Source: Mobula hypostoma
Lineage: Eukaryota
Length of the DNA stretch: 64,000 bases
Assembly (NCBI RefSeq): GCF_963921235.1
Contig: NC_086123.1
Span: forward strand, 3,968,001 to 4,032,000
Reading direction: 5' to 3'
Shown: positions 1-61,118 of the stretch, in pieces
How the letters are laid out: the number at the start of each line of letters is the position of its first letter
How positions within the stretch are numbered: the stretch's first letter is position 1
The notes under the pieces: generated by a model
What the model was told of the DNA's origin: nothing
Databases searched by the model: none
Seen by the model: the letters and a program-made list of their open reading frames with translations, nothing else
Position numbers and translations under genes: made by a program

Positions 1-999
1 GCTCCTTACTGTAACTAAGTTAAAATAAGTAGTAGTTTTCCCAACAAACTCTTGCTCCAGAAGAGCAGTTTGAACAGGAGTATTGACCATTTACGTTTGG
101 TTCAGCTTGTCAGAAAGAGAAAATAAGCCCATTCTTATTGAGGAAATCAACATTTATGATTCCTCCTAATTGTCCCAAACTATTTGGCAGAATTACCAAA
201 ACAATTTTGTCTATTTTTAAAGCCTTGAGCCAATATTCCAAATTCATGTGAGTTTTATTATATCTTCCTGAATTGTACATGACCCAGTTCATGTTTTGTT
301 TTCACCAACTATAGTTCAGATAACTAACAAGGGATTGGAATATCATAGTTAAAGGAAAGGTAAAACACCTCCCAACTTTAGCTCATCACAAGCAAAGCAA
401 CTTTGTCTAAGATTAAAAAATCATAATTTTCCTTAGGTCACAGTCTATTTCATCAAACATGGAGTGAATTCAAAATCCCTATCTTGCTCTTCATCTCTGT
501 TATTATCTGGTCTCTATCCGACCTTCATTCTCACTCTCTCTGAATCACAGGATCTTAAAAGCTCCCAAGCTTCAACGAACATTTTTGAAACTCAGCCTCA
601 TCTGCTCTCTTTTCCCTCCACACTCACTCTCTCTTTCTCTCCCTCTCCTCTCTCTCTCTCTGTCTCTCTCTCTTCCTCTCTCTTTCATTCTCTCTTTACT
701 CTCACCAAATCACAGGATCTCAAAATTTGGCAAATCTCTTTTGAAACTCATGGATCACTCACCCACTTTCTATCAATTCAGAACATGAAAAAAGTGGTCA
801 AGATGGCGCCAGCGTACGACGTTCCCATAGTCGACATCTTCCAGATGACAAGCAAAAAGCTTTTTCACTTCTTTTACGTATGTTTTCACCTTAAAAACGT
901 TTCTGGAGGGATAGAGCCTGCAACTTACAGCCTTCAGCACCGACGATCCCACTCCGGGTTGTCCCACATCTTCCCCATCACAGTCTCAGCCATTCCCTC

Positions 1000-1290
1000 A
1001 GCAGATTCTGGATCAGAGCCGAGCATCCCTCCACCAGGCAGATACTCCGGTGACCCTAATGGCTGCAGGAAGTTTATGACCCAGTGTGAGCTGACTTTCC
1101 AAGCCCAGCCAGGTCGGTTCAGTGATGATGTGCGTACGTGGTGAATCACTCGGACTCCATTCACCTGTTCAATGCTCTGTGAGAACAAGGTTCCCCCTAC
1201 AGCTCAGTCCTTCCACCAACTCGTGGTTGAGTTCAAGAGAGCGTTTGATCTTCCGGTGCAGGGTTAGGAGGCAGCTCACCGAATGGTAGG
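1000..1290 (+). mobile_element. Degenerate Ty3/Gypsy gag fragment (duplicated at about 25320-25610)
   Basis: PGRYSGDPNGCRKFMTQCELTFQAQPGRF resembles Gypsy/Sushi gag; stops follow. Confidence 0.6.
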
Positions 1291-1299
1291 GCACAGAAG

Positions 1300-1990
1300 A
1301 GTGCGGTGGAGCAAAGGGATCCATAATTCATTGAAAGTGGCCTCTCAGGTTCATAGGGTCATAAAGAAAGTTTTTGCCACATTGGTTTTCATAAATCAAT
1401 GTACTGAGTACAGGAGATGGGATATTATGTTGAAGTTGTATAAGACGTTAATGAGGCCTAATTTGGAGTATTGTGTGCACTTTTGATCACCTACTAACAG
1501 GAAAGTTATAAACAAGGTTGAACAAATACAGAGAATATTTACAAGGATGTGTTGCTGGGGCTTGAGGACCTGAGTTATAAGGAAAGATTACATGGGTTAG
1601 GACAGTATTCCTTAGAACGTAGAAGATTGAGAGGAGATTTGATAGAGATGTACAAAATTATTAGTCCTTAGGTATTGTAAATGCAAGCAGGCGTTTTCCA
1701 CTGAGGTTGAGTGAGACTACAACCAGAGGTCATGGGTTAAGGGTGAAAGGTGAAAAGTTTAAGGGGAACATGAAGGGAAACTCCATCACTCAGAGGGTGG
1801 TGAGAGCATGGAACAAGCTGCCAGCGTAAGTGGTGCATGAGAGCTCGATTTCAACACTTAAGAGAAGTTTGGATCGGTGCATGGATGGTAGGGGTATGGA
1901 GGGTTATGGTCCGGTGCAGGTCGATGGGAGTAGGCAGTTTAATAGTTTTCGGCATGGACAATTTTTGTTCTGTACTTCTCTATGATTCTA
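1300..1990 (+). mobile_element. CR1 LINE 3' fragment
   Basis: LYKTLMRPNLEYCVHF; CR1 RT C-terminus and 3' UTR. Confidence 0.8.
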
Positions 1991-2671
1991 CTTCCGTTTC
2001 CCATCGAGAAATAATGTGCAGGTTCAGGGACAGGAACCTACCTGAGACTTGAACCCAATCCAGAGAAAACACATTGTCTACTTTAATCTAAGGGTCCTGC
2101 CATCTAACCTGATAAATCCAGTTGTGAAAACATCACAGGCCAATGAGGTGACTTTAGATGAATGGCAATAAAATGGATATAAACTTTAGAAGGAAGTGGG
2201 GTTGTGAGGACTGACAGAGATGAAGACATAGAATCTTCTCCTCAGTCTCAGCCCGAGACTTACAACTGCAGAAATCCTCCTTTCTGTGGCCCTGAAATGT
2301 CCGTCTGCAACTCATTGCAAAGTTTTTGTAAGAATGGTACTTGTGTCTGGAAATCTTCTTTAGAATTATAATCTCTGTTCGAATTACTACAGAGAGTAAA
2401 TGTGCTCTTTAAGAATAAAATAATGATGTTTAATCTGCTTTGTTAGCTGGAAGTATCCCCTCCTTGGTTGTGAGGGGTGGTCCCACCACTCGAAATAGTG
2501 ATTACTGACAGCTAAACTCATTCAGAAAAGAGACCAAAATAGATAAGTAAATTAGTCTTTGACTTATAGGTTGCCACAGTATAACCTCTCTCAAGTGAGT
2601 AGGCTAATAGCTGTCTATAACTTTAAGGCTTAAGGTCTCGTCTTAAGTTTAGGACAATAAACTTGTTTGGC

Positions 2672-2903
2672 GGGAGGAGAAGATGGCGGCGCGCCTGCAT
2701 GTGCGCAGCTCTCCGGTGCAAAATGATATCGTATCTGTTAAATAGGGGCCGTGGACAATTCTGATTTGATGGAGAATGGATGTGAAAGGACAGAGGAACA
2801 TCTGGAGAAATTTCTGAAACGCCCGTTCGCTGCTGTCGTTACTGTGTGGTCGGGAATCTTTCGGAGGGTAGGCCTCAAAATCCCGTCCTTGCCTGCTTTT
2901 GGC
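2672..2903 (+). mobile_element. 5' part of a non-autonomous interspersed element fused to PLA2 exon 1
   Basis: Begins GGAGAAGATGGCGGC; homologous to 25675-26200 (+) and 36743-37240 (-). Confidence 0.75.
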
Positions 2904-5900
2904 CTGATTGTCCTGCTTCTGCTCTCAGGTAAGGAGACTCTCCTCGAGTGAGCCTTACTTTGATGTTGGTTGCTTCATGTTCTAACCTGTTTGTGTCTGT
3001 CTGTTCCTCTCTCTCCTGATGTAGCTGGTGTTGGGAGCACTTCCATTGAGTCCAGGAATCTTTATCAGTTCAATAAAATGATTAAATGTACCAACCCAGG
3101 CGTCATCCCACCACTGCAATTCAATGACTACGGCTGTTACTGTGGACCTGGTGGATCTGGGACACCAGTGGATGAGTTTGACCGGTAGGTGGACAGACGA
3201 TCTCTACAAAGCCAGTTACTATCCATTGGAGTCCAGGGACAGAGAAATGTTCTCATTCATTGTCAGAGGCAGCAGGATTGCATCTTCACTGAAGCTTTAA
3301 AATACCCCATTAAATCTCCCAATGTGAAATATGTTTCTGATGGTGGTAGTGAGTGACGATTGATGTCATGGGGTTTGCAGGCAGGTTATGGTGCCTGCTG
3401 TGGCCACACAAATACTGGCCGTGTGTCCTGGAAATAATCAGAGAGGGCAATTGCTGATGGTATATCTCACAATCTGCTTTTTGCTGTAGTTGTCAGTACT
3501 CCGACTTGAGTTAAGTTCCTGTTGGTGCAGATATGGCTGTGTATTAATTTTCTGCTTGGTGTTACTTTCAGTCCTGAAATTGGCTCCATTGAGTTGGTAA
3601 TGCGGTCTCTGTTGAAGAATTTTTTGCACCGTGGTTTTAGCGAGTTGATTTGCTGGAGCCTCTCCAGTGGTGGTTTCTGAGATGTGAGCCGTGATCAGGA
3701 TATGCCGTCTGTCCTGCAGTGATCACGAGAGACAGATCACAGATTGGTGCAGCTGGGGCTGAAGGTTTCCTACTGAGGGTGGAGGAGGACAATGACACTT
3801 GCTAGGGCTGGGAGACACTCAGTGCCTGTTGACTTCAGAGCCCCAGTGATGGTACAGAGGGTAGTGCTGGGTTTGCAGTGCCACCGGTCTGTACTGGAGC
3901 TCAGGACTGTGTTGTGGAACACACCGAGGACAGAGCAGCTGCTCCCAGGGAGGATTCTGTCCTTCTGGAGGATTGAACAGGGGGTTCGATCATGGCAGCA
4001 CAAGAGAGAACCATGACCCAGTAGCTACCTTAGTAAGGGAGCGAGGAAGGAAAGGAGAGAGGGCAACCAGCTGGTCGATCAGTCTGTTGCTTGTTGTTGG
4101 GTCTTGAACACACACAATCCATAGAAAAAGGGAAGAACTAAACATTGGTCACCTTCTCAGGTCTATTGTGGTCACGTCACTTGGAGGAATTCTTTTCCAC
4201 ATTCCCGACTGAGTCCCCACAGATCCTGATTCCACATCCCACTGTGAAGCTCCTCCCCAACTCCCTGGTACGATATGAGCCTGCTCAGTTACCCTCAGCT
4301 CAGATCACCTCCTGACTCTTAGCTCTACATGGGAAGTGTCTGACACTGGAGGCTGCTGTAACAGTGTTCTGTTCACTCTAGTCCATGAGTTTTCTACTAA
4401 ACGTTATCTGTGATTTTACAGGTGCTGCCAGACCCATGACAAGTGTTATGAAGATGCTGACAAAAAAGAGAAGTGCAGAACTGTCTTTTCACCCAAAATG
4501 ATATATTACAAGTACAGCTGCTCAAAGGGGAAAATCAAATGTACAAGTGAGTATGATCAGAGAGTGCCTCATTGTCTAATTTTTACCTCTGCTTCCATGG
4601 TCAGCAACTTTTGTCCATCCCTCATCGTCTTTGTGAAGGTGCTGGTGAGCTGCCATCTTGAACCACTGGAGTTGCCCTGGTGATGGTTCTCCCACAATGC
4701 TCTTGTGCTGAAGCTCCAGCATTCAGACCCAGTGATGATGGAGGAACGGGTTATGTTCCATGTCTGGATGGTGTGAGACTTGCAGGGACCTGTATGTGAT
4801 GCTGATCTCTGTCCCTCTAGATGGTAAAGGTTATTGGTCTGGGAGATTTGGCTGAGATACACTGGCTGCTGAATTGTACAATAGCACAGAATGCTGATAG
4901 TGGATATTGGTAGAGATCATTTCATTTGGTTTATTATTGTCGCAGGTAACAAGCCACAGTGAAAAGCTTTGTTTTTCATGCCATCCATACAGACAGAGTT
5001 GCAATGAAATCAGTTCCTTTGTCACTAGTAATGACGAGCTCCTTCTGTGTTTGGGAGCTGCACTCACCCAGGTACTGGGGCGATATCCCACTCCTGGCTG
5101 ATGGTGGAAAGGCTTCAGGCAGTAAGACATCAATCACTTCTTATGGGATGTTTAAGTTCTGACCTGCTCTTGTAAACATTCGTTAATGCATCTTGGTGAA
5201 TTATATGTGAGGGTCACCAGTGAACTCCAGTGCAAAATCTCAGAGACTCTGGCAATTCAAACACAACAACAGATTTAAGACAGAAAGTAAGCAAGAAAAC
5301 TAACAAGAGCTCAGGCAAACTATGCAGAATCCTGACAAACAGAAATCGCTCAGATACACAGAAGAACTCGGTCAGAGTTTCACCACACAAGGGCCCACAA
5401 TGACTGAGCAAAGAGGGTTTGGCCAGTTCCCCTGACATACACCCTGGAGCACATAGCAATTCAGAACAGCCCCGAGCCCAGGCAAAACATTAACCCCCAA
5501 GTCAACGACTACACTGAAAGACAGAGAAAATCCTGTGCTGATTCAGTTACCCAAATTGAATAAAAGTGATAAATGCAAGGAGAGCGTCTGATCCGATATG
5601 AGACACCTGCAACACAAAGTGAGTGAGTTCTAAGAAAAATAATTAGAATCCGGTTACTAATTTCTCAAAGGACATCAAACGGCTTTCTTGAAACAAGTCC
5701 ATAAAGGAAAAAATTCCTTTATTCCTCCAAAGAGAAAAGGTGGGATCACTAAGTGAAGGTTTAAGTAAATAGTTTCGATAAATTAAACTAAAAAGGTTAA
5801 ATTTTTTAAGATTAAAAGCTTACGAAACTGGTACCAGATTCGTAATGATAGATTAATCATAGGCTTTATATTTAGAATAGAAATTTTGGCTAATTGTACA

Positions 5901-8900
5901 GGTAAAGGAGCTCCTGATAACGAACTTAAATGAAATTGTTTCACAATTTTCAATTCCAAATCAACCCAAGATGGTCGTCCCTTTTTATCAGTCCAATATA
6001 ACCAAGAACACGCATAACGTATATTAACCGCCCAATAATACATTCTTAAATTAGGCAAAGTAAGAACTCCATCCTTTTTTAATTTTTGTAAATGACATTT
6101 TCCAATTCTTGGTCTTTTATTATTTCAAACAAAAGATGAAATAATAGAGTCAACTTGATCAAAAACTTCTTAGTTAGAAAATTAGGAATATTTTGAAATA
6201 CATATAAAAGTTTTGGTAAAATCATCATTTTAACTGCATGAATTTGACCTGCTAATGAAAGTGTAAGTGGATTCCATCTAGAAAAAAATTGCTTCATAAA
6301 ATCCACTAAGGGAACTTTATTAGCTCTATAAAGGTTTCCATAATTTTTAGTGATGATAATACTTAAATATTTAAAAGAATCCGTAACTTTTAGAGGAATG
6401 TCATCATATATAGAAGCAGAATCATTTAAAGGAAATAATTCACATTTATGCAGTTTTAACTTATATCCTGAAAACAATCCAAATTCATTGAATAATTTCA
6501 CCAAACTAGAAATAGATTCTTCGGGATTCGAAACATAAACCAAAAGATCATCCTCATAAAGGGAGATCTTATGAATAGTCCCATTTCTAGAAATTCCTTG
6601 AATATGTTTAGCTTCACAAAGTGCAATAGCCAAAGGTTCCAACATCAAATTAAATAACAGAGGACTTAACGGACATCCTTGTCTCGTACCCCGGGAAAGT
6701 TGGAAAAAGGGGGATCTACAGTTATTAGTGATAACAGTGGCAATAGGGCTTTTATATATCAATCTAATCCATTTATTAAAATTAGTACCAAAGCTAAATA
6801 TCTCTAAAACTTTAAATAGATATTTCCATTCAACTCTATCAAATGCCTTTTCGGCATCTAGAGAAACAATACACTGGGGAATCTTAGAGAGGGATGTGTA
6901 TATAATATTTAACAGTCTTCGAGTGTTAGAAAACGAATAACGCCTTTTATAAACCTGTTTGATCCTGAGAAATAATCTTAGCTAGTATATTCTCTATCCG
7001 ATTAGCCATTAATTTTGAAAGAATTTTGGCATCCACATTTAATAATGAAATATGTCTACATGAAGCACAATCAGTAGGGTCTTTATCTTTCTTAGGAATT
7101 AAAGAAATAGAAGCTTCATAAAATGTGGAAGGTAACTCTGCAAGCAGAAAAGAATCTTTAAGCATTTCCAACATATAAGGAGTAAGCAAATGTTCAAATT
7201 TTTTATAAAATCCTACAGTAAAACCATCCAATCCAAGAGCTTTACCAGATTGCATTGAAAGAATAGCTTTCTGAATTTCTCTTTCAGTAAAAGGAGCATC
7301 AAGAATTTGCTGATCTTCAACAGATATTCTAGGAAAATCAATCTTTTGTAAAGAGGCAGCTGGAAACTGAGATTTATAGAGTTGACTGTAATAGTCTTGA
7401 AAATTTTTATTAATATCTTCATAATTACAAGCTAAACTACCATCTCCCTTACGAATTTTTAAAATTTGTCTTTTAGCTCTAACTGCTTTAAGTTGAGATG
7501 ATAATAGCTTGTTACTTTTATCTCCAAACATATAAAATTGTCTTTTTAAATTAAGCAAATTTCTTTCAATAGGATAAGTTAATAGTAAATTATATTGTGA
7601 TTGAAGTTCAACCCTTTGTTTAAATAAATCAACATTAGAAGAAACTGCATAAGTATTATCTAGATCTTTAATTAGTCTTGAAATTCTATCTAACTCTATT
7701 TTTGTCTGTTTCTTGAGTTTAGCCAAATAAGATATTTTCTGACCTCGCAAATATGCTTTAAGTGTATCCCATATAATCAATTTCGAGACTTCTCCCGTAT
7801 TATTAAGAAGAAAGAAATCTTTTATCTGAATCTCTATAAAGTTAACAAAGTCCGAACTTTGTAATAAATTCTTTGGAAAGCGCCAAGGCAAGTTTACATT
7901 ACTAACATCAAAAGTTAGTAAAAAGTTAAGCTCAAAAGTTAAGTTTAAAGAAACATAGAAAATAGGTGCAGGAGTAGGCCATTCGGCCCTTCGAGCCTGC
8001 ACCGCCATTTATTATGATCATGGCTGATCATCCAACTCAGAACCCCGCCCCAGCCTTCCCTCCATACCCACTGACCCCTGTAGCCACAAGGGCCATATCT
8101 AACTCCCTCTTAAATATAGCCAATCAACTGGCCTCAACTGTTTCCTGTGGCAGAGAATTCCACAGATTCACCACTCTCTGTGTGAAGAAGTTTTTCCTAA
8201 TCTCGGTCCTAAAAGGCTTCCCCTCTATCCTCAAACTGTGACCCCTCGTTCTGGACTTCCCCAACATCGGGAACAATCTTCCTGCATCTAGCCTGTCCAA
8301 TCCCTTTAGGATCTTATACGTTTCAATCAGATCCCCCCTCAATCTTCTAAATTCCAACGAGTACAAGCCCAGTTCATCCAGTCTTTCTTCATATGAAAGT
8401 CCTGCCATCCCAGGAATCAATCTGGTGAACCTTCTTTGTACTCCCTCTATGGCAAAGATGTCTTTCCTCAGATTAGGGGACCAAAACTGCACACAATACT
8501 CCAGGTGTGGTCTCACCAAGGCCTTGTACAACTGCAGTAGTACCTCCCTGCTCCTGTACTCGAATCCTCTCGCTATAAATGCCAGCATACCATTCGCATT
8601 TTTCACCGCCTGCTGTACCTGCATGCCCACTTTCAATGACTGGTGTATAATGACACCCAGGTCTCGTTGCACCTCCCCTTTTCCTAATCGGCCACCATTC
8701 AGATAATAATCTGTTTTCCTATTTTTGCCACCAAAGTGGATAACTTCACATTTATCCACATTAAATTGCATCTGCCATGAGTTTGCCCACTCACCCAACC
8801 TATCCAAGTCACCCTGCATCCTCTTAGCATCCTCCTCACTGCTAACACTGCCACCCAGCTTCGTGTCATCCGCAAACTTGGAGATGCTGCATTTAATTCC

Positions 8901-14900: not shown

Positions 14901-15631
14901 ATATTTGCAGGACTATTCTGATCACATTAAAAGAGGTTTCTCCCAAGCTCTTTTGTTACATACAATCTCCTCACCAGACAGATGAAAAATATGCTCAGTT
15001 TAACAGTCAGGAGAGAGAGAGATGGGTCACTTCTCCCTCAGGAGCACAGTGGAATATCACTCTTCCAGTTTGTGTTAATATCACTGCAGTGGGATTGAAA
15101 CCTCAGTCAGAGGCAAGATCCAAGGCTGCTGCTTGGGGCCACATCAGTGGTGAAGGGCTGGGGGTCACCAGGGACTTTTCTAGAATTCTAGATTCAGCTA
15201 TGATTGTGGTGTAGATCTTCACAGGATTTGTTATTCTGATGTCAATGCATGTCTGACATCAGTTTAAAAGCATCCATTGACTCTAGAACTGATGAGGTCA
15301 TCACAATGAAATTAAAAACCCAAATTACAATTAGTATTTTAAACGATTTACAGAACATTTATATAAAGATTAGAATGTTGCACATAATATATAGATGGAA
15401 GTTGAATTATCAAAATATATTAAAATTTAAAATTATCTTTCATTCTTTCATAATCCAAGGCAAATACTGTATCATTAATATAATGGATTATTTTGAATAT
15501 GCTTCCTTTCAGGTGGTAATTATCACTGCGCGAAGTTTATCTGTGAATGTGATCGAAAGGCGTCCATCTGCTTCTCGAAAGCAAAATACAACCCTAAGAA
15601 TAAAGGCATCAGTCAATCACGCTGCAAATAG
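2769..15631 (+). CDS. PLA2G1B: Group I secreted PLA2, copy A; native ATG and promoter deleted, in-frame TE-derived ATG at 2769 (chimeric gene or young pseudogene)
   Basis: Exon 1 remnant ends 2928|gt; exons 3025-3184, 4422-4546, 15513-15631 are open with intact splice sites. Mature protein [52 protein letters not shown]...[21 protein letters not shown]...ISQSRCK*. Confidence 0.75.
3025..3184 (+). CDS. PLA2G1B: PLA2 copy A exon 2
   Basis: 160 nt, Ca2+ loop YGCYCGPGG. Confidence 0.93.
4422..4546 (+). CDS. PLA2G1B: PLA2 copy A exon 3
   Basis: 125 nt, CCQTHDKCY. Confidence 0.93.
7951..10914 (-). mobile_element. Young 5'-truncated CR1 LINE nested in the L1
   Basis: 892-aa ORF2; TTCTATGTTTCT tail; TTTAAAG duplicated at 7944-7950 and 10915-10921. 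Confidence 0.95.
8124..10802 (-). CDS. CR1 ORF2 endonuclease/reverse transcriptase
   Basis: [27 protein letters not shown]; a single TGA shortly before the normal C-terminus. Confidence 0.9.
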   Translation of the reverse strand: MDELKVQIVINDYDIVGITETWLQGDQGWELNVQGYSIFRRDRHEGRGGGVALLVKEEINAIERKDISREDVESIWVELRNTKGQKTLVGVVYRPPNSSSEVGDGIKQEIRNVCNKGTAVIMGDFNLHVDWVNQIGKGAEEEDFLECMRDGFLNQHVEEPTREQAILDWVLSNEEGLISDLVVRGPLGKSDHNMVEFFINMESDIVNSETKVLNLKRGNFEGMRRELAKIDWQMTLKGLTMDMQWQTFKGCMDELQQLFIPVWQKNKSRKVVHPWLTREIRDSINSKEVAYKLAGESGSPEDWEKFRVQQRRTKGLIRKGKKDYERKLAGNIKKDCKSIYRYVKRKRLVKTNVGPLQTETGELIMGSKDMADQLNNYFGSVFTKEDVNNLPEIVRDRGSSEMEELSEIHVSREVVLGKLKGLKADKSPGPDGLHPRVLKEVAQEIVDALVIIFQNSLDSGLAPEDWRVANVTPLFKKGGREKPGNYRPVSLMSVVGKLLESVIKDVITAHLESSEMIGQSQHGFVKGKSCLTNLIEFFEDVTSRVDRGEPVDVVYLDFQKAFDKVPHGRLVCKLKAHGIGGKVLVWVENWLADRKQRVGINGTFSEWQAVTSGVPQGSVLGPQLFTIYINDLDEGIKCSISKFADDTKLGGSVSSEEDAKRMQGDLDRLGEWANSWQMQFNVDKCEVIHFGGKNRKTDYYLNGGRLGKGEVQRDLGVIIHQSLKVGMQVQQAVKNANGMLAFIARGFEYRSREVLLQLYKALVRPHLEYCVQFWSPNLRKDIFAIEGVQRRFTRLIPGMAGLSYEERLDELGLYSLEFRRLRGDLIETYKILKGLDRLDAGRLFPMLGKSRTRGHSLRIEGKPFRTEIRKNFFTQRVVNLWNSLPQETVEAS
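12424..13215 (-). CDS. L1 ORF1 protein (263 aa, open)
   Basis: Coiled coil followed by L1 ORF1 motifs [10 protein letters not shown] and IERAHR. Confidence 0.8.
   Translation of the reverse strand: MVIMSYPLRSGKQLFEPSNGKGKTSNVKSEDMPVWAERLERALMGLDKEIDNNTSELKSFRLSLQTIEENIVSLNTEFKESKHQIADISTRLEQAQRKIVHLNVRLRRNNIRIVGLEEGFENGNLLEYFANLFQSLFPDILSQPPDIERAHRIFTSSDKARPILVNFLRFKVKDQIIKCARKQKALKFNSSEIPFYEDYPWEVMEQRIKFISVMKIAHEKRLFPSLRYPARLKLFPKDSTPRVFLDPQVASDFVNSVVESADV
15513..15631 (+). CDS. PLA2G1B: PLA2 copy A exon 4
   Basis: 119 nt, [16 protein letters not shown], ends TAG. Confidence 0.92.
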
Positions 15632-17321: not shown

Positions 17322-17470
17322 NNNNNNNNNNNNNNNNNNNNNNNNNNNNNNNNNNNNNNNNNNNNNNNNNNNNNNNNNNNNNNNNNNNNNNNNNNNNNNN
17401 NNNNNNNNNNNNNNNNNNNNNNNNNNNNNNNNNNNNNNNNNNNNNNNNNNNNNNNNNNNNNNNNNNNNNN
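17322..17470. other. Assembly gap (149 N)
   Basis: Run of N. Confidence 1.
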
Positions 17471-25100: not shown

Positions 25101-25674
25101 CAGAACATGAAAAAAGTGGTCAAGATGGCGCCAGCGTACGACGTTCCCATAGTCGACATCTTCCAGATGACAAGCAAAAAGCTTTTTCACTTCTTTTACG
25201 TATGTTTTCACCTTAAAAACGTTTCTGGAGGGATAGAGCCTGCAACTTACAGCCTTCAGCACCGACGATCCCACTCCGGGTTGTCCCACATCTTCCCCAT
25301 CACAGTCTCAGCCATTCCCTCAGCAGATTCTGGATCAGAGCCGAGCATCCCTCCACCAGGCAGATACTCCGGTGACCCTAATGGCTGCAGGAAGTTTATG
25401 ACCCAGTGTGAGCTGACTTTCCAAGCCCAGCCAGGTCGGTTCAGTGATGATGTGCGTACGTGGTGAATCACTCGGACTCCATTCACCTGTTCAATGCTCT
25501 GTGAGAACAAGGTTCCCCCTACAGCTCAGTCCTTCCACCAACTCGTGGTTGAGTTCAAGAGAGCGTTTGGTCTTCCGGTGCAGGGTTAGGAGGCAGCTCA
25601 CCGAATGGTAGGGCACAGAAGAGTGCGGTGGAGCAAAGGGATCCATAATTCATTGAAAGTGGCCTCATTGAAAG

Positions 25675-26200
25675 TGGAGAATGGACGGGAAAGCACAGAG
25701 GAACATCTGGAGAAATTTCTGAAACGCCCGTTCGCTGCTGTCTTTACTGTGCGGTCAGGAATCTTTCGGAGGCTAGGCCTCAATATCCCTGTCCTTGCCT
25801 GCTTTTGGCGACCTGGCGACCGAGAAGGAGGTCGAATCATTCGGACAGAGATGGTGCTCAGTACTCAGTGTCGGAGAGCTGATCGGAGCTCGAAATTTTC
25901 GGATGACTCAGAGTCGGACCGTGGTCGGGCATGAAAGGGAGAGTTTTTCTTCCTTCTCCCCTCTGCGTGAGATGTGGGACATTTGGGAGACTTTGAACTT
26001 TACTGTGCTCATGGACATCTCATCAAGTTATGCTATTATTGCACTGTTTGTAACTATATGTTATAATTATGTGGTTTTGTCAGTTTTTTTCAGTCTTGGT
26101 TTGTCCTGTGTTTTGTGATATTACACCGGAGGAAATAATGTATCATTTCTTAATGCATACATTACTAAATGACAAGAAGAGAGGGCTACATGTCTTCATA
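25675..26200 (+). mobile_element. Non-autonomous interspersed element, 5' end deleted
   Basis: Same family as 2672-2903 and 36743-37240. Confidence 0.7.
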
Positions 26201-26835
26201 AGCAATCATCATAAAATGGATACACCCAGTATCATCACATACATGTACTGCCTGTGACTGTGTCCTAGCGTACAGAGTGTGGGTGGTCACACATGAGATC
26301 GCTCAGAACTATGTTAGATTAATGTGAAGAATGGGGCCCCAAGGGTCTATTTATGCCCCTGAGGGTCTGCACAGCAGCACCAATGTAAAATCATCCCTCG
26401 CTGTAGCAATGAAGTTGGAAAGGGCACAGTGTGTTCAGTATCTGCAGAGAGTGTGCAGAAATTAATGCATTTTGTTTTTCAGTACAGGGGGTTCTGTTGA
26501 TTCAGTCCCCAAACACTCTCTGGAAAGTGGAGCTGGAGGAAGGAGGGTGGGAGGGGTTCTTTTATTGACTGGGGACACCACCATAGTCACCAATCCCCAG
26601 GAAGAGCATCACCTCATGGAAATCACAGGGCAAGTCCCACAGCGACTTGTCTCATTTTCAGAGGTGGTCACCATATCCTCTCCATACTCTAAAACCAATT
26701 ACCGAGAGTTCGTGCCGTGACAATTCCAGCCCATCACCCCTGTCGTGGACTCTGTTTAGTGTCTATGTTTCAATCAGTGAGACCCATCATGATCACATTT
26801 GGGTTAGTTATGCACACTTAAAATAGAACACCGTC

Positions 26836-26976
26836 TCACACACAAACACACACACACACACGTAAATTGACACACACTCAAACACATACGTGGACACATA
26901 CACACACATACATGTAAATTAACACATGTGGACACACAGTCGTGGACACGCACGCACACACACACACACACACACT
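26836..26976 (+). repeat. Imperfect (CA)n microsatellite upstream of PLA2-B
   Basis: CA-rich run. Confidence 0.9.
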
Positions 26977-27029
26977 GAGAAGAGCCGGAAGCAGTCAGGA
27001 TTGGCTCTGTCTCTCCAGCTCAGTCAAAT

Positions 27030-27100
27030 AGAGACCAGCTGTATCAACATGAGAGTTTGTCTTTATCTTATCCATGTTATCAGCTCCCAATATATAATCC
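27030..27100 (+). promoter_or_regulatory. PLA2 copy B proximal promoter
   Basis: TATATAA at 27091-27097, 62 nt before the ATG; three reverse GATAA motifs within 27063-27082; E-box CAGCTG at 27036-27041. Confidence 0.6.
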
Positions 27101-27152
27101 AGGGACTGAACCTCACAAGTGTGATTTCCAGGACAGGGAAGAGCAAACGACA

Positions 27153-27186
27153 ATGTTGGGCCTGATTGTCCTGCTTCTGCTCTCAG
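27153..27186 (+). CDS. PLA2G1B: PLA2 copy B exon 1 (signal peptide)
   Basis: ATG..TCAG|gtaagg, [11 protein letters not shown], 34 nt. Confidence 0.92.
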
Positions 27187-30100
27187 GTAAGGAGACTCTC
27201 CTCGAGTGAGCCTTACTTTGATGTTGGTTGCTTCATGTTCTAACCTGTTTGTGTCTGTCTGTTCCTCTCTCTCCTGATGTAGCTGGTGCTGGGAGCACTT
27301 CCATTCAGTTCAGGAACCTCATTCAGTTCGGTGAATTGATTAAATGTGCCAACCCAAGCATCACTTCACCACTGCAATTCAATAACTACGGCTGTTACTG
27401 TGGAACTGGTGGATCTGGGACACCAGTGGATGACCTTGACCGGTAGGTGGACAGACGATCTCTACAGAGCCAGTTACCATCCATTGGAGTCCAGGGACAG
27501 AGAAATGTTCTCATTCATTGTCAGAGGCAGCAGGATTGCATCTTCATTGAAGCTTCAAAATACCCCATTAAATCTCCCAATGTGAAATATGTTTCTGATG
27601 GTGGCAGTGAGTGACAATTGATGTCATGGGGTTCGCAGCCAGGTTATGGTGCCTACTGTGGCCACACAAATACTGGCCGTGTGTCCTGGAAATAATCAGA
27701 GAGGGCAATTGCTGATGGTATATCTCACAATCTGCTTTTTGCTGTAGTTGTCAGTACTCCGACTTGAGTTAAATTTCCGTTGGTGCAGATATGGCCGTGT
27801 ATAAATTTTCTGCTTGGTGTCACTTTCAGTCCTGAAATTGGCTCCATTGAGTTGGTAATGCGGTCTCTGTTGAAGAATTTTTTGCACCGTGGTTTTAGCG
27901 AGTTGATTTGCTGGAGCCTCTCCAGTGGTGGTTTCTGAGATGTGAGCCGTGATCAGGATATGCCGTCTGTCCTGCAGTGATCACGAGAGACAGATCACAG
28001 ATTGGTGCAGCTGGGGCTGAAGGTTTCCTGCTGAGGGTGGGGGAGGACAATGACACTTGCTAGGGCTGGGAGACACTCAGTGCCTGTTGACTTCAGAGCC
28101 CCAGTGATGGTACAGAGGGTAGTGCTGGGTTTGCAGTGCCACCGGTCTGTACTGGAGTTCAGGACTGTGTAGTGGAACACACCGAGGACAGAGCAGCTGC
28201 TCCCAGGGAGGATTCTGTCCTTCTGGAGGATTGAACAGGGGGTTCGATCATGGCAGCACAAGAGAGAACCATGACCCAGTAGCTACCTTAGTAAGGGAGC
28301 GAGGAAGGGAAGGAGAGAGGGCAACCAGCTGGTCGATCAGTCTGTTGCTTGTTGTTGGGTCTTGAACACACACAATCCATAGAAAAAGGGAAAAAATAAG
28401 CATTGGTCGCCTTCTCAGGTCTATTGTGGTCATGTCACTTGGTGGAATTCTTTTCCACATTCCCGTCTGATTCCCCACAGATCCTGATTCCACATCCCAC
28501 TGTGAAGCTCCTCCCCTACTCCCTGGTACGATATGAGCCTGCTCAGTTACCCTCAGCTCAGATCACCTCCTGACTCTTAGCTCTACATGGGAAGTGTCTG
28601 ACACTGGAGGCTGCTGTAACAGTGTTCTGTTAACTCAAGTCCATGAGTTTTCTACTAAACGTTATCTGTGATTTTACAGGTGCTGCCAGACCCATGACAA
28701 GTGTTATGAAGATGCTGACAAAAAAGAGAAGTGCAGAACTGTCTTTTCACCCAAAATGATACATTACAATTACAGCTGCTCAAAGGGGAAAATCGAATGT
28801 ACAAGTGAGTATGATCAGAGAGTGCCTCATTGTCTAATTTTTACCTCTGCTTCCATGGTCAGCAACTTTTGTCCATCCCTCATCGTCTTTGTGAAGGTGC
28901 TGGTGAGCTGCCATCTTGAACCACTGGAGTTGCCCTGGTGATGGTTCTCCCACAATGCTCTTGTGCTGAAGCTCCAGCATTCAGACCCAGTGATGATGGA
29001 GGAACGGGTTATGTTCCATGTCTGGATGGTAAAAGTTTTTTCTCCCAATTCCCCCCTCCCCATTACAACGAAAATACGTAACCTTAAGATAAGAAAGACC
29101 AGCAAAGAAAAAAATGTTGATACTTAATCATTGAAAATAAACTAAGGGAATGCGAAAACAGTCTCCAAAGACGTCAGAGCAATACTATAAACCAAAGAGT
29201 TTAATCTCTAAAAAGAGAAAAGCAGCGCCATCATTCTTTAACTTACTACCTTATTTAACAAAAGAACCAAAGCTAATTATCTATTACTAAACACACCGCA
29301 ATATAAGAAAAAAGCCTATATAAACTGTAAGCAAACTATCACTTAATTAATAAAGAAAAAGAAAAATAGAAACAGATAATCAAACCAGTTCACAATCTAT
29401 CCGCTGTATTAATACACTCCGTATACTAAACAGTCTTTAAAAAAAGTCATTCTTTAGTCAAACCAGGAAGATCACCTCTTCTTTAAGTAATATCAAAGGA
29501 TATCTTCAGTTTACCGAAATCTTCAAAGCCTGTTTTCTTTCAGAAAATTATTCAGAAACTCTAATATCCTTCATACATCAGCCGATTCCACGACAGAGTT
29601 GACAAAATCCGATGCCACTTGGGGATCCAAGAAGACACGAGGGGTAGAATCTTTAGGAAATAACTTTAATCTCGCTGGGTATCTCAGGGATGGAAAGAGT
29701 CTTTTTGCGTGAGCGATCTTCATGACCGATATGAATTTGATCCGTTGTTCCATAACTTCCCATGGATAATCTTCATAAAAACGGATCTCGGAACCGTTAA
29801 ATTTTAAAACTTTCTGTTTTCTTTCACATTTTATGATTTGGTCTTTAACTTTAAAGCGAAGAATGTTGACTAAAATTGGTCGAGCTTTATCTGACGAAGT
29901 GAAAATTCTGTGAGCTCTTTCAATATCGGGAGGCTGAGATAGAATATCCGGGAACAGGAATTGAAACAGGTTGGCAAAATAATCCAATAAATTCCCATTC
30001 TCGGAGCCTTCTCGAAGACCCACAATACGAATGTTATTCCTACGCAACCTTAAGTCTAAATCGACAATTTTGCGTTGAGCCTGTTCCAATCGGGTTGAAA

Positions 30101-32786
30101 TATCTGCAATCTGACATTTCGATTCTTTAAACTCAGTATTCAAGGAAACAATATTTTCCTCAATAGTCTGTAAACTCTGTCGGAACGACTTCAACTCAGA
30201 AGTGTTATTGTCTATTTCCTTGTCGAGACCCATCAACGCACGTTCCAAACGCTCAGCCCAGACAGGCATATCTTCTGATTTTACATTCGAAGTTTTTCCC
30301 TTTCCATTGCTGGGTTCAAAAAGCTGTTTTCCACTTCTTAAAGGATACGGCATAATGACCACTATTTCCCACCAAGATCCAGAAAATAAAAGTTGAATAA
30401 TTCAAAGTTTAGACTGGGGAAAAGGAGGAATTAAAGGCAGCCACAAAATTTATGTATTACTCCATTGAGCTGCAGGCGGAAGTCCCACAATAGGGTATTT
30501 TAACAGACTCCTGCATAGAAACATGGAGCTTAGAAAAATAGAGGGCTATGGGTAACTCTAGGTAATATTTAAGGTAAGGACATGTTCTGCAGAGATTTAT
30601 GGGCCGGGGGCCTGTATTGTGCTGTAGGGTTTCTATGTTTCTATGTTTCTATGTTCTCTGTAGCTGCATCAATATGTAGTGACCTGGTTAAGTCCTCAGA
30701 GATATTGACACCCAGGCACTTGAAATTGCTCATTCTCTCCACTCCTGATAGATACAGAAATAAACTGAATGGCAGTAATTACATATATGTTTATTAAATA
30801 GTTAAATTAAATACGTAGTACAAAAAAAGGAAATAAAAAAGTAATGGGGTAGTGTTCATAAGTTTAATGTCCATTTAGAAATCAGATGGCAGAGAGAAAG
30901 AAGCTGGTCTTGACGTGTGTGCCTTCAAGCTTCTGTACCTTCTTCCTGACGGTAACAATGAGAAGAGGGCATGTACTGGGTGGTGAGGGTCCTTAATACT
31001 GGACAACTCCTTCCTGAGGCAGCTTATGGAACATAAAGTCTAAGCAATCCAAGGAAGACTATACACCTGAGAATTATGAGAGGCATAGATAAAATAAACA
31101 ATCACAGCCCTTTTCCAAGGCAGGAAGGTCTAAAACTAGAGGTCTGGGTTTAACGTGGGAGTAGAAAAAGATTTAAAAGGAACAACTTGTTCACACAGAG
31201 GCTGCTGGGTATGTAGAAGGTGCAAAGCAGATGGGAACAATTACAATATTTCAAAGATAGTTGGAAAGCTTCAGAGGGATCTGGGCCAAGTGCAGGCAGA
31301 TGGGATAGCATAGAAAGACAGTGGGTCAGCATGGATGAGTTGGGCCGAAGAGCCTGGCTCAGAGCTGCAAAACCTTTACGACTCTATGAACGTGAAAGAT
31401 GGCTGAATTACGCTCCTTATTTGAAGATGGTTATTGTCTGACACGTGTGTGTTGTCAATGTTACTCACCAGCTAGTGGTCAGGGCCCAGATATTGCTGGA
31501 TCATATGCAGAGAGCAAATTATGAACTGAGCATTATTGATGAGTAAGTACTGTCTGGTAGCACTGACACCATCAAAAATCATTTGAAATAGTAGATTGAG
31601 TAAATATTTGGCTCTGAAAGCCTGCTGCACTATTTGTCAAGATATAGGTTTATCTTCTTGCTCAACAATTTTTCCTGACTTATTTCAATATTCCCAGATT
31701 CCTCCAATTTATCAATTTCAATCAGCTTCAGTTTTGAGTGAATTCATGACATCCACAGCCCTCTGGCACAGGATCTTCCCCCAGTTTGAACCCTCAACTG
31801 TTTGCCCTTAATCTGCGCCAGTGACCCCTGATTCTATTTCCCATCAGTACAGGAAACACCCTCTCCATATCTGTCCTGTGATCCCTGCTGTGGTTTCAAA
31901 ATTCAACCCACAGAAAATGGATTCAGATGAATGAAAGGAGGAATATTTTTGCTTCACTTCATCTCAGCATTTTACAGAATGCAATAGAAATGTTGTGACC
32001 AGTTTGTTTGCAGCAGGATCCCAATGGAACCATGACCAGATAAATTATCTAAGCTGATATTTGCAGGACTATTCTGATCACATTAAAAGAGGTTTCTCCC
32101 AAGCTCTTTTGTTACATACAATCTCCTCACCAGACAGATGAAAAATATGCTCAGTTTAACAGTCAGGAGAGAGAGAGATGGGTCACTTCTCCCTCAGGAG
32201 CACAGTGGAATATCACTCTTCCAGTTTGTGTTAATGTCACTGCCGTGGGACTGAAACCTCAGAGTCAGAGGCAAGATCCAAGACTGCTGCTTGGGGCCAC
32301 ATCAGTGGTGAAGGGCTGGGGGTCACCAGGGACTTTTCTAGAATTCTAGATTCAGCTATGATTGTGGTGTAGATCTTCACAGAATTTGTTATTCTGATGT
32401 CAATGCAAGTCTGACATCAGTTTAAAAGGATCCATTGACTCTAGAAATGATAAGGTCATCACAATGAAATTAAAAACCCAGATTACAATTAGTAATTTAA
32501 ATGATTTACAGAACATTTATATAAAGATTAGAATGTTGCACATAATATATAGATGGAAGTTGAATTATCAAAATATATTAAAATTTAAAATTATCTTTCA
32601 TTCTTTCATAATCCAAGGCAAATACTGTATCATTAATATAATAGATTATTTTGAATATGTTTCCTTTCAGGTAAAAGTCACTGCGAGAAGTTTATCTGTG
32701 AATGTGATCGAAAGGCGTCCATCTGCTTCTCGAAAGCAAAATACAACCCTAAGAATAAAGGCATCAGTAAATCTCGCTGCAAATAG
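27153..32786 (+). CDS. PLA2G1B: Group I secreted phospholipase A2, copy B; intact 4-exon gene, 144 aa
   Basis: Exons 27153-27186, 27283-27442, 28680-28804, 32671-32786, all GT-AG, total 435 nt: [144 protein letters not shown]. Signal peptide, Arg-ending propeptide, Ca2+ loop, His48/Asp49/Tyr52/Asp99, 14 Cys including the group I C11-C77 pair. Symbol denotes family likeness; orthology not tested. Confidence 0.95.
27283..27442 (+). CDS. PLA2G1B: PLA2 copy B exon 2
   Basis: 160 nt, ag|CT..CG|gt, [19 protein letters not shown]. Confidence 0.96.
28680..28804 (+). CDS. PLA2G1B: PLA2 copy B exon 3
   Basis: 125 nt, CCQTHDKCY catalytic motif. Confidence 0.96.
29031..30486 (-). mobile_element. L1 5' remnant with open ORF1 (29571-30362) in PLA2-B intron 3
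   Basis: Paralogous to 11910-13339; ORF2 absent. Confidence 0.92.
32671..32786 (+). CDS. PLA2G1B: PLA2 copy B exon 4
   Basis: 116 nt, [13 protein letters not shown] motif, ends TAG. Confidence 0.95.
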
Positions 32787-36742: not shown

Positions 36743-37240
36743 ATAAAGAACAGACCATAGGCACAGTAAAAAAAAGTCTCAAAGTCCTGAGTCGATCGAC
36801 TCCTGAGTCCCCGATAGCAGGCGGCAAAAAAGAGAAATTCCCTGCCATAAACCTCCAGGCACCGTCAACTTGCCGATGCCTTGGAAGCAGCCGACCCCAG
36901 CCGACCCCGAGTCCATCCGTCCAAAAACTCCGAGCTTCCGAGCAGCCTCTCCGATACAGCCTCCCGAACACCATCCTCTGCCGAGCACCTTCGACCTCAC
37001 CCTGGCCGCTGAAACATGCAAAACCGAGGATTTTGAGGCTTTCAGCTCTGGAGATTCCAGTTACCACACAGTAGCAGCGGCAGTGAAGCGGGCATTTCAG
37101 AAGTTTTCCAGATGTTCTGCTGTGCGCTCACGTCTGTCTCCATCAAATCAGGATTGTGCACGGTCCCCTACTTGACAAATAACAGATATTCATTACTGAA
37201 GTGGCCGCGCGCGCTGTTGTCGCGCCGCCATCTTCTCCCC
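36743..37240 (-). mobile_element. Non-autonomous interspersed element, same family as the one fused to PLA2-A
   Basis: Minus strand starts GGGGAGAAGATGGCGGCGCG and contains GAACATCTGGAAAACTTCTGAAATGCCCG. Confidence 0.7.
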
Positions 37241-37249
37241 CCCTCCCGG

Positions 37250-40200
37250 GAGGATTTGGTGTCATATGCAAATTTGTTGATCCAGTTAACCACATTATCA
37301 TACAGATCGTTGATATAGATGACATACAACAACAGACCCAGCACTGATTCCTGCAGCACTCACAAGTCACTGACTTCCAGTCAGAGAGGCAACTATCTAC
37401 TACGAATCTTAGGCTTCTCCCACAAACCAATGTCTAATCAAATTTACTACCCCACCTTGAATGCCCAGCACCTAATCCTTGACCAACGTCCTATGCGGGA
37501 CCTTATCAAAAGCCTTGTTAAAGTCCATTTAGACAACATCCACTGCCTTGTCTTCATCAACTTCCGTGATAACTTTCTCAAAAATCTCTGTAAGATTGTT
37601 TAGACGTGACCAGCTGCTCACAAAGCCATGCTGACTATCCTTAATCAGTCCATGTCTATCTAAATAATTTTGCATTTCGTCCCTTAGAATATCTTCCAAT
37701 AACTTTCCCATGACTGATGTCAGCCTTACCCGTCTATAACTTCTTGGTTTATTTTTAGAGTCTTTCTTAAGCAGTGGAACAACGCTGGCTACCCTCCAAT
37801 CCTCCAGTCAATAGGGATGATTTAAATATCTCTACTAGGGCCCTGACAATCTCTGCACTTGCCTCCCACAGTGTCTGAGGGAACAGATTGTCAGGGCCTG
37901 GGGATGTATCCACCCTGATTTGCCTCAGGACAACAAACACCTCTTCCTCTGTAATCTGTACAGAGCCCATGAAGTTGATGTCACTTTGCCTCACTTCTCG
38001 AAACTCTGTGCCTATCTCCTGAGTATACACAGATGTAGAGAAATCATTCAAAATCTTCCCCATCTCTTTTGGCTCCCTGAATAGATTACTATTCTGATTT
38101 TTGCAGAGACCAGTTTTGTCCCTTGCGACCCTTTTGCTCTTAACATAACTGTAGAATCCCTTAGGATTCTCCTTCACCTTGTCTCTGGAGCAACTTCATC
38201 CCTTCTTTTAGCCCTCCTAATTTCCTTCATAAGTACTCGCTTGTATTTCCTATACTCAGTAAGTAAATCATTTGCTCCTTTATATCTATTCCTACTGTGC
38301 CTCTCCTTTTTTTTCTTAACCAGGGCCTTAATTTCCCTTGATAACCAAGGTTCCATACACCTGTTATTCTGACATGCACGTACAAGATCTGTACTCTCAG
38401 AATTTCACATTTGAAGGCCTCCCACTTTCCAAGTACACATTTGCCGGAAAACAGCCTGTCCCAATCCACATTTGCCAGGTTGTTTCTGGTACCAGCAAAA
38501 TTGGTCTTTCTCCAATTTAGAATCTCAAGCCACGGACCAAACTTACCTTTTTGCATACATACTTTGAAACTGATGGCATTCAGATCACTAGATGCAAAGT
38601 GTTCCCATACACAGACTTCTGTCACCTGCCCTGTCTCTTTCCCTAATAGCAGATCCAGTATCGCACTCTCTCTCGTTGGGACTTCTACGCACTGATGAAG
38701 AAGACTTTTCCAAACACATTTGACAAACTCTATCCCATCTAGTCCTTTTACAGTATTGGAGTCCCAGTCAATATGTGGAAAGTTAAAATCACCGACTACA
38801 ACAACCTTATGTTTCTTGCAACAGTCTGCAATCTCTCTAAAAATTTGTCCCTCTATATCCCTACGACTGTTGCACGGTCTCTAATAAAGCCCCGTTAATG
38901 TGGTCATACATTTCTCATTTCTCAGTTCCACCCACAACACCTCACTAGACAAGTTCTCCAGTCTATCCTGACTGAACACTGCCACGAAATTTCCCTACTA
39001 GTAACGCCATCCCTCCTCCTCTAATCCCTCCCACTCTATCACGTCTAAAACAACGGAACCCTGGAATATTAAGCTGTCAGTCCTGCCTCTCCTGCAACCA
39101 CTAATGGCTATAATATCATAATTCCATGTGTTGATCCATGCCCTGAGCTCATCCACCTTCTGTACGATACTCCTTGCATTGAAATATACGCAGCTCAGGA
39201 CACTAGTCACACCACGCTCAATCTTTTGATTCCTGACTGTGTGAGGATTTACCAACATCTGCCTTCGCAACCTCTCCGCTATCTGTTATGGCACTCTGGT
39301 TCCCACCCTCCTGAAACTCCAGTTTAAATTGCACCGTACAGCACTAGCAAACCTTCCCACTAGAATATTAGTCCCCTTCCAGTTCAGGTGCAAACCATCC
39401 CTTCTGTAAAGGACTCACCTTCCCTGTAAGACAGCCCAATGATCCAAAAATCTTATGCCCTCCCTCCTACACCAACTGCTTAGCCACGTGTTAAACTGTA
39501 ATCCGCCAATTTCTTGTCTCACTAGCACGTGGCACGGGTAGCAATCCTAATATCACAACCCTGGGGATCCTGCCATTTAACTTAGCACCTAACTCCCTGA
39601 ACTCACTTTGCAGAAACTCATCACTTGTCCTACCTACGTCATTGGTATCTACATGGACCACAGCTTCTGGCTGTTCACTTTCTCACTTAAGCTTACTGAG
39701 GACTCAATCTGAGATATCGTGGACGTTGGCACCCTGGAGGCAACATACCATCCGGGAATTTCATTCTCGTCCACAGAACCTCCTTTCTACTCCCCTAACA
39801 AATCCCGGTCACCACAGCTCACCTCTTCTCCTCCCTTCCCTTCTGAATCGCAGAGCCAGACTCAGTGCTAGAGACCTAACTTCTGTGACTTCCCTCTGCT
39901 AGGTCATTCCCCGCCCCCCACAACCCCCCAACAGTATCCATAGTGGTATATCTGTCGTTTGGGGGGATGGCCACTTGAGTATTCTGCACTGGCTGTTTAA
40001 TCCCTTTCCCCTTCCCGACAGTCACCCAGCTTCCTGTGTCCTGCACCTTGGGTGTATATACCTCTCTATATGCCCTATCTATCACCCCCTCATCCTCCCT
40101 CCCGTATGATCTAGAGTTCATCCAGTTCCAGCACCAACTCCTTAGCGCGTATGGTTAGAAGCCATAGCTGGATGCACGTCTTACAGGCATAGTCATCAGA

Positions 40201-60333: not shown

Positions 60334-61118
60334 TGAAGACTCACCCAGTCACCATTCCATTGAAGATTTACCCAGTCATTATTCCATTGAAGATTCACCC
60401 AGTCACAATTCCATTGAAGACTCACCCTGTTGCAATTCCATTGAAGATTCACCCAGTCGCCATTCCATTGAAGATTCACCCTGTCACTATTCCATTGAAG
60501 ATTCACCCAGTCACCATTCCATTGAAGATTTACCCAGTCATTATTCCATTGAAGATTCACCCAGTCACAATTCCATTGAAGAGTCACCCAGTCACAATTC
60601 CATTGAAGACTCACCCTGTTGCAATTCCATTGAAGATTCACCCATTCGCCATTCCATTGAAGATTCACCCTGTCACTATTCCATTGAAGATTCACCCAGT
60701 CACCATTCCATTGAAAATTCACCCAGTCACTATTCCATTGAAGATTCACCCAGTCACTATTCCATTGAAGATTCACCCAGTCGCTATTCCATTGAAGATT
60801 CACTCAGTTGCTACTCCATTGAAGATCCACCCAGTCACTATTCCATTGAAGATTCACCCAGTCACTATTCCATTGAAGATTCACCCAGTCGCTATTCCAT
60901 TGAAGATTCGCCCAGTCGCCATTCCATTGAAGATTCACCCAGTCACCATTCTATTGAAGATTCACCCAGTCACTATTCCATTGAAGATTCACTCAGTCAC
61001 TATTCCATTGAAGATTCACCCAGTCGTTATTCCATTGAAGATTCACCCAGTCATTATTCCATTGAAGATTCACCAAGTTGCCATTCCATTGAAGATTCAC
61101 CCTGCCGCCATTCTATTG
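60334..61118. repeat. 27-bp minisatellite, about 29 copies
   Basis: Unit TTCCATTGAAGATTCACCCAGTCACTA. Confidence 0.97.

Follow-up and report, generated by a model that had tools for sequence, protein, structure and literature searches.

A phospholipase A2 duplicate of the ray Mobula hypostoma joined to repeat sequence by a deletion at its 5' end: a possible early pseudogene

A window of 64,000 nucleotides from the lesser devil ray, Mobula hypostoma (RefSeq assembly GCF_963921235.1, contig NC_086123.1, positions 3,968,001 to 4,032,000 of the forward strand) contains two tandem four-exon genes for group-I phospholipase A2 (PLA2), designated copy A and copy B, at a spacing of 24.3 kb. The best explanation for copy A is that it arose by tandem duplication of a gene for a secreted PLA2 of group I (pancreatic type) and that a microhomology-mediated deletion of 1352 bp took away its core promoter and leader together with the ATG and codon 2. 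This loss joined the middle of an interspersed repeat of approximately 0.6 kb, here termed R, to codon 3 of the gene, leaving the exon-1 donor and exons 2 to 4 untouched. An open reading frame (ORF) that runs through the join from an ATG at position 2769 most likely came about incidentally with the event and does not mark the start in use. The gene would then be silent, or weakly transcribed from mobile-element sequence further upstream, and is probably becoming a pseudogene. The probability of this reading, namely a 5'-truncated duplicate with an incidental R-derived ORF that is silent or weakly and unproductively transcribed, is put at about 0.5. All readings of copy A given here rest on DNA sequence and annotation. 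Coordinates are those of the window and are collected in Table 1.

The loss was apparent from alignment of the two copies. Positions 1-1344 of copy A correspond to 24324-25666 of copy B at 99.5% identity (self-BLAST, identity count), while in self-BLAST 2770-2903 aligned to 25675-25809 at 93-94% and 2898-4772 to 27156-29030 at 97%. Since these flanking alignments leave the stretch 25810-27161 of copy B unmatched, those 1352 bp are missing from copy A. This bears out a first-pass annotation of the same DNA, which had described the loss of promoter, TATA box, 5' untranslated region (UTR) and ATG at a GGC. A leader of approximately 55 nt, lying in copy B between the CCAAT/TATATAA sequences and ATG 27153, was lost with them. 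Around the GGC the similarity at the junction extends to TT[T/G]GGC, in which 5 of 6 positions match.

Copy B had been taken as the reference for this loss, and here the earlier description holds only in part: copy A indeed lacks the 1352 bp, but copy B also underwent a separate deletion. Copy A keeps 1.4 kb (1345-2762) for which self-BLAST found no equivalent in copy B. This stretch comprises roughly the first 100 bp of R, the 3' fragment of a long interspersed nuclear element (LINE) and further pieces of repeats. The LINE fragment, which we take to be CR1/L2-like from a C-terminal motif of ORF2, gave no Pfam match, and pieces of the repeat mosaic recur at 8462-8561, 48456-48496 and 43623-43731. 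Repeat R of copy A is collinear with an independent copy of the repeat elsewhere in the window (copy C) through the part missing from copy B. Copy A therefore represents the older state at that point, and the layout of copy B is not ancestral. Because 1345-2762 is absent from copy B, the two genes differ by two rearrangements and not by one, with one deletion in each copy and both inside the same 1.5 kb or thereabouts. The scar in copy B (25651-25685) includes an 8-bp filler that copies sequence 12 bp upstream, creating an 11-nt direct repeat in which ATTGAAAGTGG occurs twice; judged from the scar alone, it looks like the product of templated end joining. The 3-bp microhomology at the junction of copy A and the 8-bp filler at the deletion of copy B resemble the outcome of microhomology-mediated end joining, with the difference that here the mechanism is read from scars only.

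An assembly artefact, in which the junction or the 1.4 kb specific to copy A arose by a mis-join within a 24-kb tandem duplication, is very improbable. The assembly, sMobHyp1.1, is based on Oxford Nanopore (ONT) reads and was polished with Illumina reads (bioRxiv 10.64898/2026.10.27.761883); the flanks of the two genes are 97-99.5% identical, and a gap of 149 N is present at 17322-17470, 1.7 kb past the last exon of copy A. All three circumstances could favour such an error. Nevertheless, the junction joins non-homologous sequences with an overlap of 3 bp, which is unlike the collapse of a repeat, and the R of copy A is collinear with copy C over precisely the part missing from copy B. In addition, many variants private to copy A lie on either side of the junction, and a second paralogue, XP_062890223.1, seems to have the same junction between phenylalanine and glycine, as described below.

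Repeat R occurs three times in the window with unrelated flanks, as found by nhmmer using a composite query of the parts in copies A and B; besides the one in copy A, the search placed copies at 25673-26199 (copy B) and at 37242-36744 on the minus strand (copy C). The alignment between copies A and C begins with GGGAGG..AGAAGATGGCGG and places the 5' end of the repeat at approximately 2664, and not at 2672 as had been proposed. No Rfam match was obtained for either half of R, and on that basis a short interspersed nuclear element (SINE) derived from tRNA, 5S or 7SL was rejected as its identity. A Pfam match, an ORF and recognisable hallmarks of a LINE, SINE or long terminal repeat (LTR) element were likewise sought in R and not found. 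The YY1-type motif AAGATGGCGGC to which the first-pass annotation had drawn attention is present in copy A and is exact also in copy C (37224-37234, minus strand). A 16-nt block of R, AGAAGATGGCGGCGCG, shows no difference between A and C, which otherwise share just 76% identity over the repeat as a whole. Allowing at most one mismatch, the window contains 7 matches to the motif against 0.5 expected, mostly within repeats. The ratio of observed to expected CpG is 0.8-1.1 in all three copies of R compared with 0.35 for the window. Three of the eight substitutions within R between copies A and B are CpG transitions, as expected for DNA that is methylated in the germline.

The 5' UTR of the human LINE-1 holds an internal promoter with a YY1 site. 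R is similar to the extent that it has a YY1-type core, AAGATGGCGGC, within approximately 20 nt of its 5' end and that this core has been kept between diverged copies. It differs in its length of approximately 0.6 kb and in being without an ORF or the recognisable features of a LINE, SINE or LTR element, and the likeness is one of sequence only. A further YY1-like sequence, AAGATGGCGCC, encloses the start of the gag remnant upstream of each gene (800-810 and 25122-25132).

The first-pass annotation had also proposed that R could supply both promoter and start codon to copy A. On this model transcription would begin near 2664 under the YY1-type motif and ATG 2769 would be used, giving a protein of 187 residues whose long N-terminal extension would serve either as an extended signal peptide or as a type II membrane anchor. 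The earlier description of the exon is accurate. ATG 2769 is in frame and places 44 new residues ahead of GLIVLLLLS; with exons 2 to 4 the frame amounts to 187 codons, and the donor CAG/GTAAGG at 2928/2929 is intact. The three upstream ATGs also close ahead of 2769, as had been stated. The proposal gains from this open frame and intact donor, from a motif some 17 nt from the end of the element that is identical in two copies only 76% alike, from the high CpG content of R and from the basic residues R32, R33 and K37 that precede the hydrophobic core.

The start codon itself is unfavourable. ATG 2769 has a weak context, with T at -3, whereas ATG 2683, at a distance of 19 nt from the putative cap site, has a strong one (A at -3, G at +4). 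The upstream ORFs stop 24 nt and 5 nt ahead of ATG 2769, and by the rules of scanning and reinitiation such spacings are unfavourable. Given the weak context and three upstream ATGs with close stops, those rules predict poor use of ATG 2769. When 200,000 random positions in the window were walked upstream codon by codon, an in-frame ATG was met before the first stop at 26% of positions and frames, and at 4% of positions that ATG lay at least 44 codons upstream. With a chance of 26%, the fusion ORF is no argument for function. Nor is the frame from 2769 kept in the other copies of R, there being a 1-nt indel in copy B and a different frame in copy C, and the 44 residues are consequently regarded as a chance ORF. 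An exact look-up of the unspliced exon-1 ORF returned no record, a homology search found no 187-residue form, and the 44-residue extension matched no Pfam family. There is no Logan or other transcript-derived protein on record for the gene of copy A. Finally, the RefSeq pipeline, supplied with RNA-seq from nine organs, began the gene elsewhere, at ATG 803, which counts against ATG 2769.

Of the earlier interpretation, then, a deletion that leaves an open fusion between R and exon 1 stands; the use of R as promoter and start finds no support here. It is opposed by the poor ATG context, the upstream ORFs, a frame that is not kept, the decay of CpG sites in R between copies A and B as in methylated DNA, and the RefSeq start at 803, and is considered decidedly unlikely. 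We infer that ATG 2769 does not drive productive expression, and the alternative that the annotation had itself allowed, a silenced copy A, is at least as likely as the proposal. By hydropathy and charge the 44 residues placed ahead of the canonical signal-peptide core include, at positions 19-31, a weakly hydrophobic stretch, followed by the three basic residues. On the same two measures only, the N-terminus of either the 187-residue form or the 169-residue RefSeq form might in principle still target the protein.

The RefSeq model of copy A, XP_062890225.1 (P0121), has 169 amino acids, starts at ATG 803 and not at 2769, and has a coding span of 14829 bp that is exactly 803 to 15631. Joining 803-877 to 2898-2928 and to exons 2 to 4 reproduces the protein residue for residue, and tblastn matched residues 1-25 to 803-877 at 100%. 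The first coding exon opens an ORF (803-1141) that, in HMMER searches, matched near the N-termini of Gag and Gag-Pol proteins with Retrotrans_gag, Ty3_capsid, DUF4939, protease and reverse transcriptase domains. The ORF is, on the strength of these matches, a degenerate remnant of a Ty3/gypsy gag; the gag N-terminus matched no Pfam family, and the assignment was made from the HMMER matches and their domains.

This model suggests that copy A may be a working chimera: transcription would start at or before 803 in the Ty3/gypsy remnant, 803-877 would be joined to 2898, and the product would be a secreted PLA2 of 169 residues with a workable, longer signal peptide and new regulation. Several observations are in keeping with it, including the exact reproduction of the protein from these segments, a good GTATGT donor at 877/878, the identical N-terminus of a paralogue model, XP_062890223.1 (P0005), and hydropathy consistent with a signal peptide, the RefSeq N-terminus having an n-region with KK and a longer hydrophobic core (hydropathy, charge). 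The annotation moreover drew on RNA-seq from nine organs, the pancreas not among them (bioRxiv 10.64898/2026.10.27.761883).

The difficulty lies at the acceptor. The bases preceding 2897/2898 are CT, no AG occurs within 2872-2925 and the junction cannot be slid to either side; the nearest AGs, at 2865 and 2870, are both out of phase. Acceptors with AG that are in phase (2775, 2796 and 2808) have purine-rich tracts upstream, and the canonical alternative, splicing from 877 to 3025, breaks the frame, with a stop after 18 codons. A U12-type intron at 878-2897 was rejected, the 5' site being GTATGT and not GTATCC and the branch-site-like TCCTTGCC being without an adenosine. Position 2898 is exactly the first codon that can be aligned to a canonical 'ML-GL...' paralogue, and the boundary may therefore mark a limit of modelling rather than a splice site. 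In addition, Gnomon gives odd N-termini to other batoid PLA2 copies (P0003, P0099). A homology search with residues 1-40 of XP_062890225.1 found nothing. The chimera is considered unlikely on balance, though likelier than the use of R as promoter and start. Any expression of copy A would probably depend on a transcription start upstream of R.

Odd and non-homologous N-termini were noted in several batoid RefSeq models of PLA2, namely P0003 of Hypanus sabinus, P0099 of Mobula birostris/yarae and P0005 of M. hypostoma, and one such N-terminus carries a YLDD motif like that of reverse transcriptases. In batoid arrays it seems common for a PLA2 copy to lack the canonical first exon, or for the annotation to have rescued a copy of this sort. 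The N-termini of the models XP_062890225.1 and XP_062890223.1 rest on a non-canonical acceptor and should be treated with caution.

Beyond its 5' end copy A is well preserved. Exons 2 to 4 contain zero stops, frameshifts or broken splice sites, all conserved cysteines are present, and XP_062890225.1 scored 120.7 bits against PF00068 (cut-off 32.1). The catalytic His48-Asp49 (CCxxHDxCY) and the calcium loop YGCYCGxGG, both found in copy A, are invariant across an alignment of ten paralogues. The mature N-terminus has Cys at position 11 and is immediately preceded by ...SIESR, a propeptide ending in Arg as in group IB; a group I disulfide between Cys11 and Cys77 is inferred for copy A. Of the marks of an unprocessed pseudogene, copy A shows the loss of promoter and start codon, and its coding exons carry no disabling mutations. 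The latter fact is of limited weight: the neutral divergence of the two copies, taken from introns, is about 2.5%, so that few disabling changes would be expected in 0.4 kb and the intact exons probably say little. Intron 3 of copy A is 11 kb, 7.3 kb longer than that of copy B, through LINE insertions on the minus strand at 4773-12081. An 892-codon ORF with endonuclease and reverse transcriptase domains (8124-10802) was found in a LINE in this intron.

Exons have diverged more than introns between the copies. Exon 2 of copy A (3025-3184) is 86.9% identical to that of copy B (27283-27442), whereas intron 1 is 100% and intron 2 97.5% identical; variants specific to exon 2 of copy A include 3031, 3048, 3052, 3059-3064 and 3176-3177. 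Values of dN and dS between A and B were 0.081 and 0.047. The residues that differ mostly match, in a mosaic arrangement, states seen elsewhere among the paralogues of M. hypostoma and M. birostris/yarae. This pattern points to gene conversion and/or diversifying selection within the PLA2 array, with conversion among its members the likelier cause of the divergence of exon 2. Since the mosaic points to gene conversion, the ratio of dN to dS was not used as evidence on the function of copy A. Gene conversion would, in addition, preserve the intact appearance of a dead copy.

The arrangement recalls the PLA2 clusters of snake venoms (group I/II arrays) in having close, tandem four-exon PLA2 genes with exons more diverged than introns. 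It also recalls the disabled duplicates of group I/II arrays, in that one member, copy A, is without its own 5' end. It differs from the venom clusters in that the animal is a ray, the enzymes are of the pancreatic type with a propeptide, and the mosaic points to gene conversion as much as to accelerated substitution.

Three considerations weigh against the reading of copy A as a truncated and silent duplicate. Firstly, RefSeq calls copy A protein-coding, so transcript evidence for it may exist. Secondly, the conserved YY1-type motif at the 5' end of R, together with the high CpG ratio, would suit a promoter. Thirdly, a further paralogue probably shares the junction. Phenylalanine occupies canonical position 2 only in copy A and XP_062890223.1, the residue being leucine in 8 of 8 canonical paralogues, and in copy A this phenylalanine is encoded by an R-derived TTT at the junction. 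From this shared residue XP_062890223.1 likely carries the same junction, and the two proteins also both have V in ...SAGVGS. The comparison is one of protein N-termini only; two intact paralogues with the junction would hint at retention. It could even be that the fusion of repeat and exon 1 is an established form and not a fresh lesion. Copy A and XP_062890223.1, and perhaps more paralogues, would then be expressed from 5' exons derived from mobile elements and secreted by way of a rebuilt signal peptide, an idea offered tentatively and thought rather unlikely. Were it true that this form is common to both paralogues, the deletion and the mobile elements would have given some members of a growing array of batoid PLA2 genes a new regulation.

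Table 1. Positions of the features of copies A and B and of repeat R in the window.
Feature	Position	Strand	Description
Upstream block common to A and B	1..1344	+	Holds degenerate Ty3/gypsy gag remnant (on HMMER matches); B 24324-25666
First coding exon of XP_062890225.1	803..877	+	Start of gag ORF; ATG inside AAGATGGCGCC; donor TAC/GTATGT at 877/878
Interspersed-repeat mosaic, in A, not in B	1345..2663	+	LINE (presumably CR1/L2-like) 3' fragment ~1345-1960 and other repeat pieces
Repeat R, 5' part in copy A, cut at deletion junction	2664..2903	+	Interspersed repeat of ~0.6 kb, no class assigned
YY1-type motif AAGATGGCGGC	2680..2690	+	~17 nt from 5' end of R; in best-conserved A/C block
Upstream ORFs	2683..2764	+	ATG 2683 (20 codons, stop ends 2745); ATGs 2699 and 2723 (one frame, stop ends 2764)
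Fusion exon	2769..2928	+	Begins at ATG 2769; 44 R-derived codons followed by 9 from original signal-peptide exon
Deletion junction of A	2901..2903	+	GGC microhomology
Copy A exon 2	3025..3184	+	End of signal peptide, propeptide ending in R, N-terminus, Ca2+ loop YGCYCGPGG; canonical acceptor and donor
Copy A exon 3	4422..4546	+	Catalytic motif CCQTHDKCY; canonical splice sites
Copy A exon 4	15513..15631	+	Carries stop codon
Repeat R in copy B	25667..26199	+	Without first ~100 bp; reaches 3' end of R; ATTGAAAGTGG doubled at left edge
Segment of B missing from A	25810..27161	+	3' part of R, upstream region, CCAAT/TATATAA 27087-27097, leader, ATG 27153, codon 2
Copy B coding region	27153..32786	+	Exons 27153-27186, 27283-27442, 28680-28804, 32671-32786; XP_062890154.1
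Repeat R copy C	36744..37258	-	Inserted in LINE fragment; fixes 5' end of family

The predicted protein of copy B is identical to XP_062890154.1 of M. hypostoma, and at least five more PLA2 paralogues are located on the same chromosome record as copies A and B. A gene for a sugar transporter of the major facilitator superfamily (MFS; 580 aa product) begins approximately 7.5 kb downstream of copy B (from about 40300, gene table), and in M. birostris/yarae an MFS sugar-transporter gene is likewise next after the last PLA2 gene (gene table). That last PLA2 of M. birostris/yarae (P0002) has an exon 2 like that of copy A and an exon 4 like that of copy B. A literature search on PLA2 arrays of Mobula or batoids gave nothing. 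A minisatellite with a 27-bp unit (28.5 copies, matches 90%) occupies 60334-61102.

The event behind copy A is of a known kind. Promoters and first exons derived from mobile elements, such as chimeras initiated in LTRs or LINEs, offer the nearest likeness, the 5' end of copy A having been replaced by element sequence that could provide a transcription start, a first exon and even a start codon, with R and the gag remnant as the two candidates. The known cases differ in that transcripts beginning within the element define them. They differ also in that the original promoter of copy A was deleted and not supplemented, leaving no fallback. If copy A is silent, it would be an ordinary early-stage pseudogene. 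If it is expressed from mobile-element sequence, it would represent a clean, natural case of a young tandem duplicate whose promoter and start codon were both replaced, and would help to account for the gain of different expression among genes of the batoid PLA2 array.

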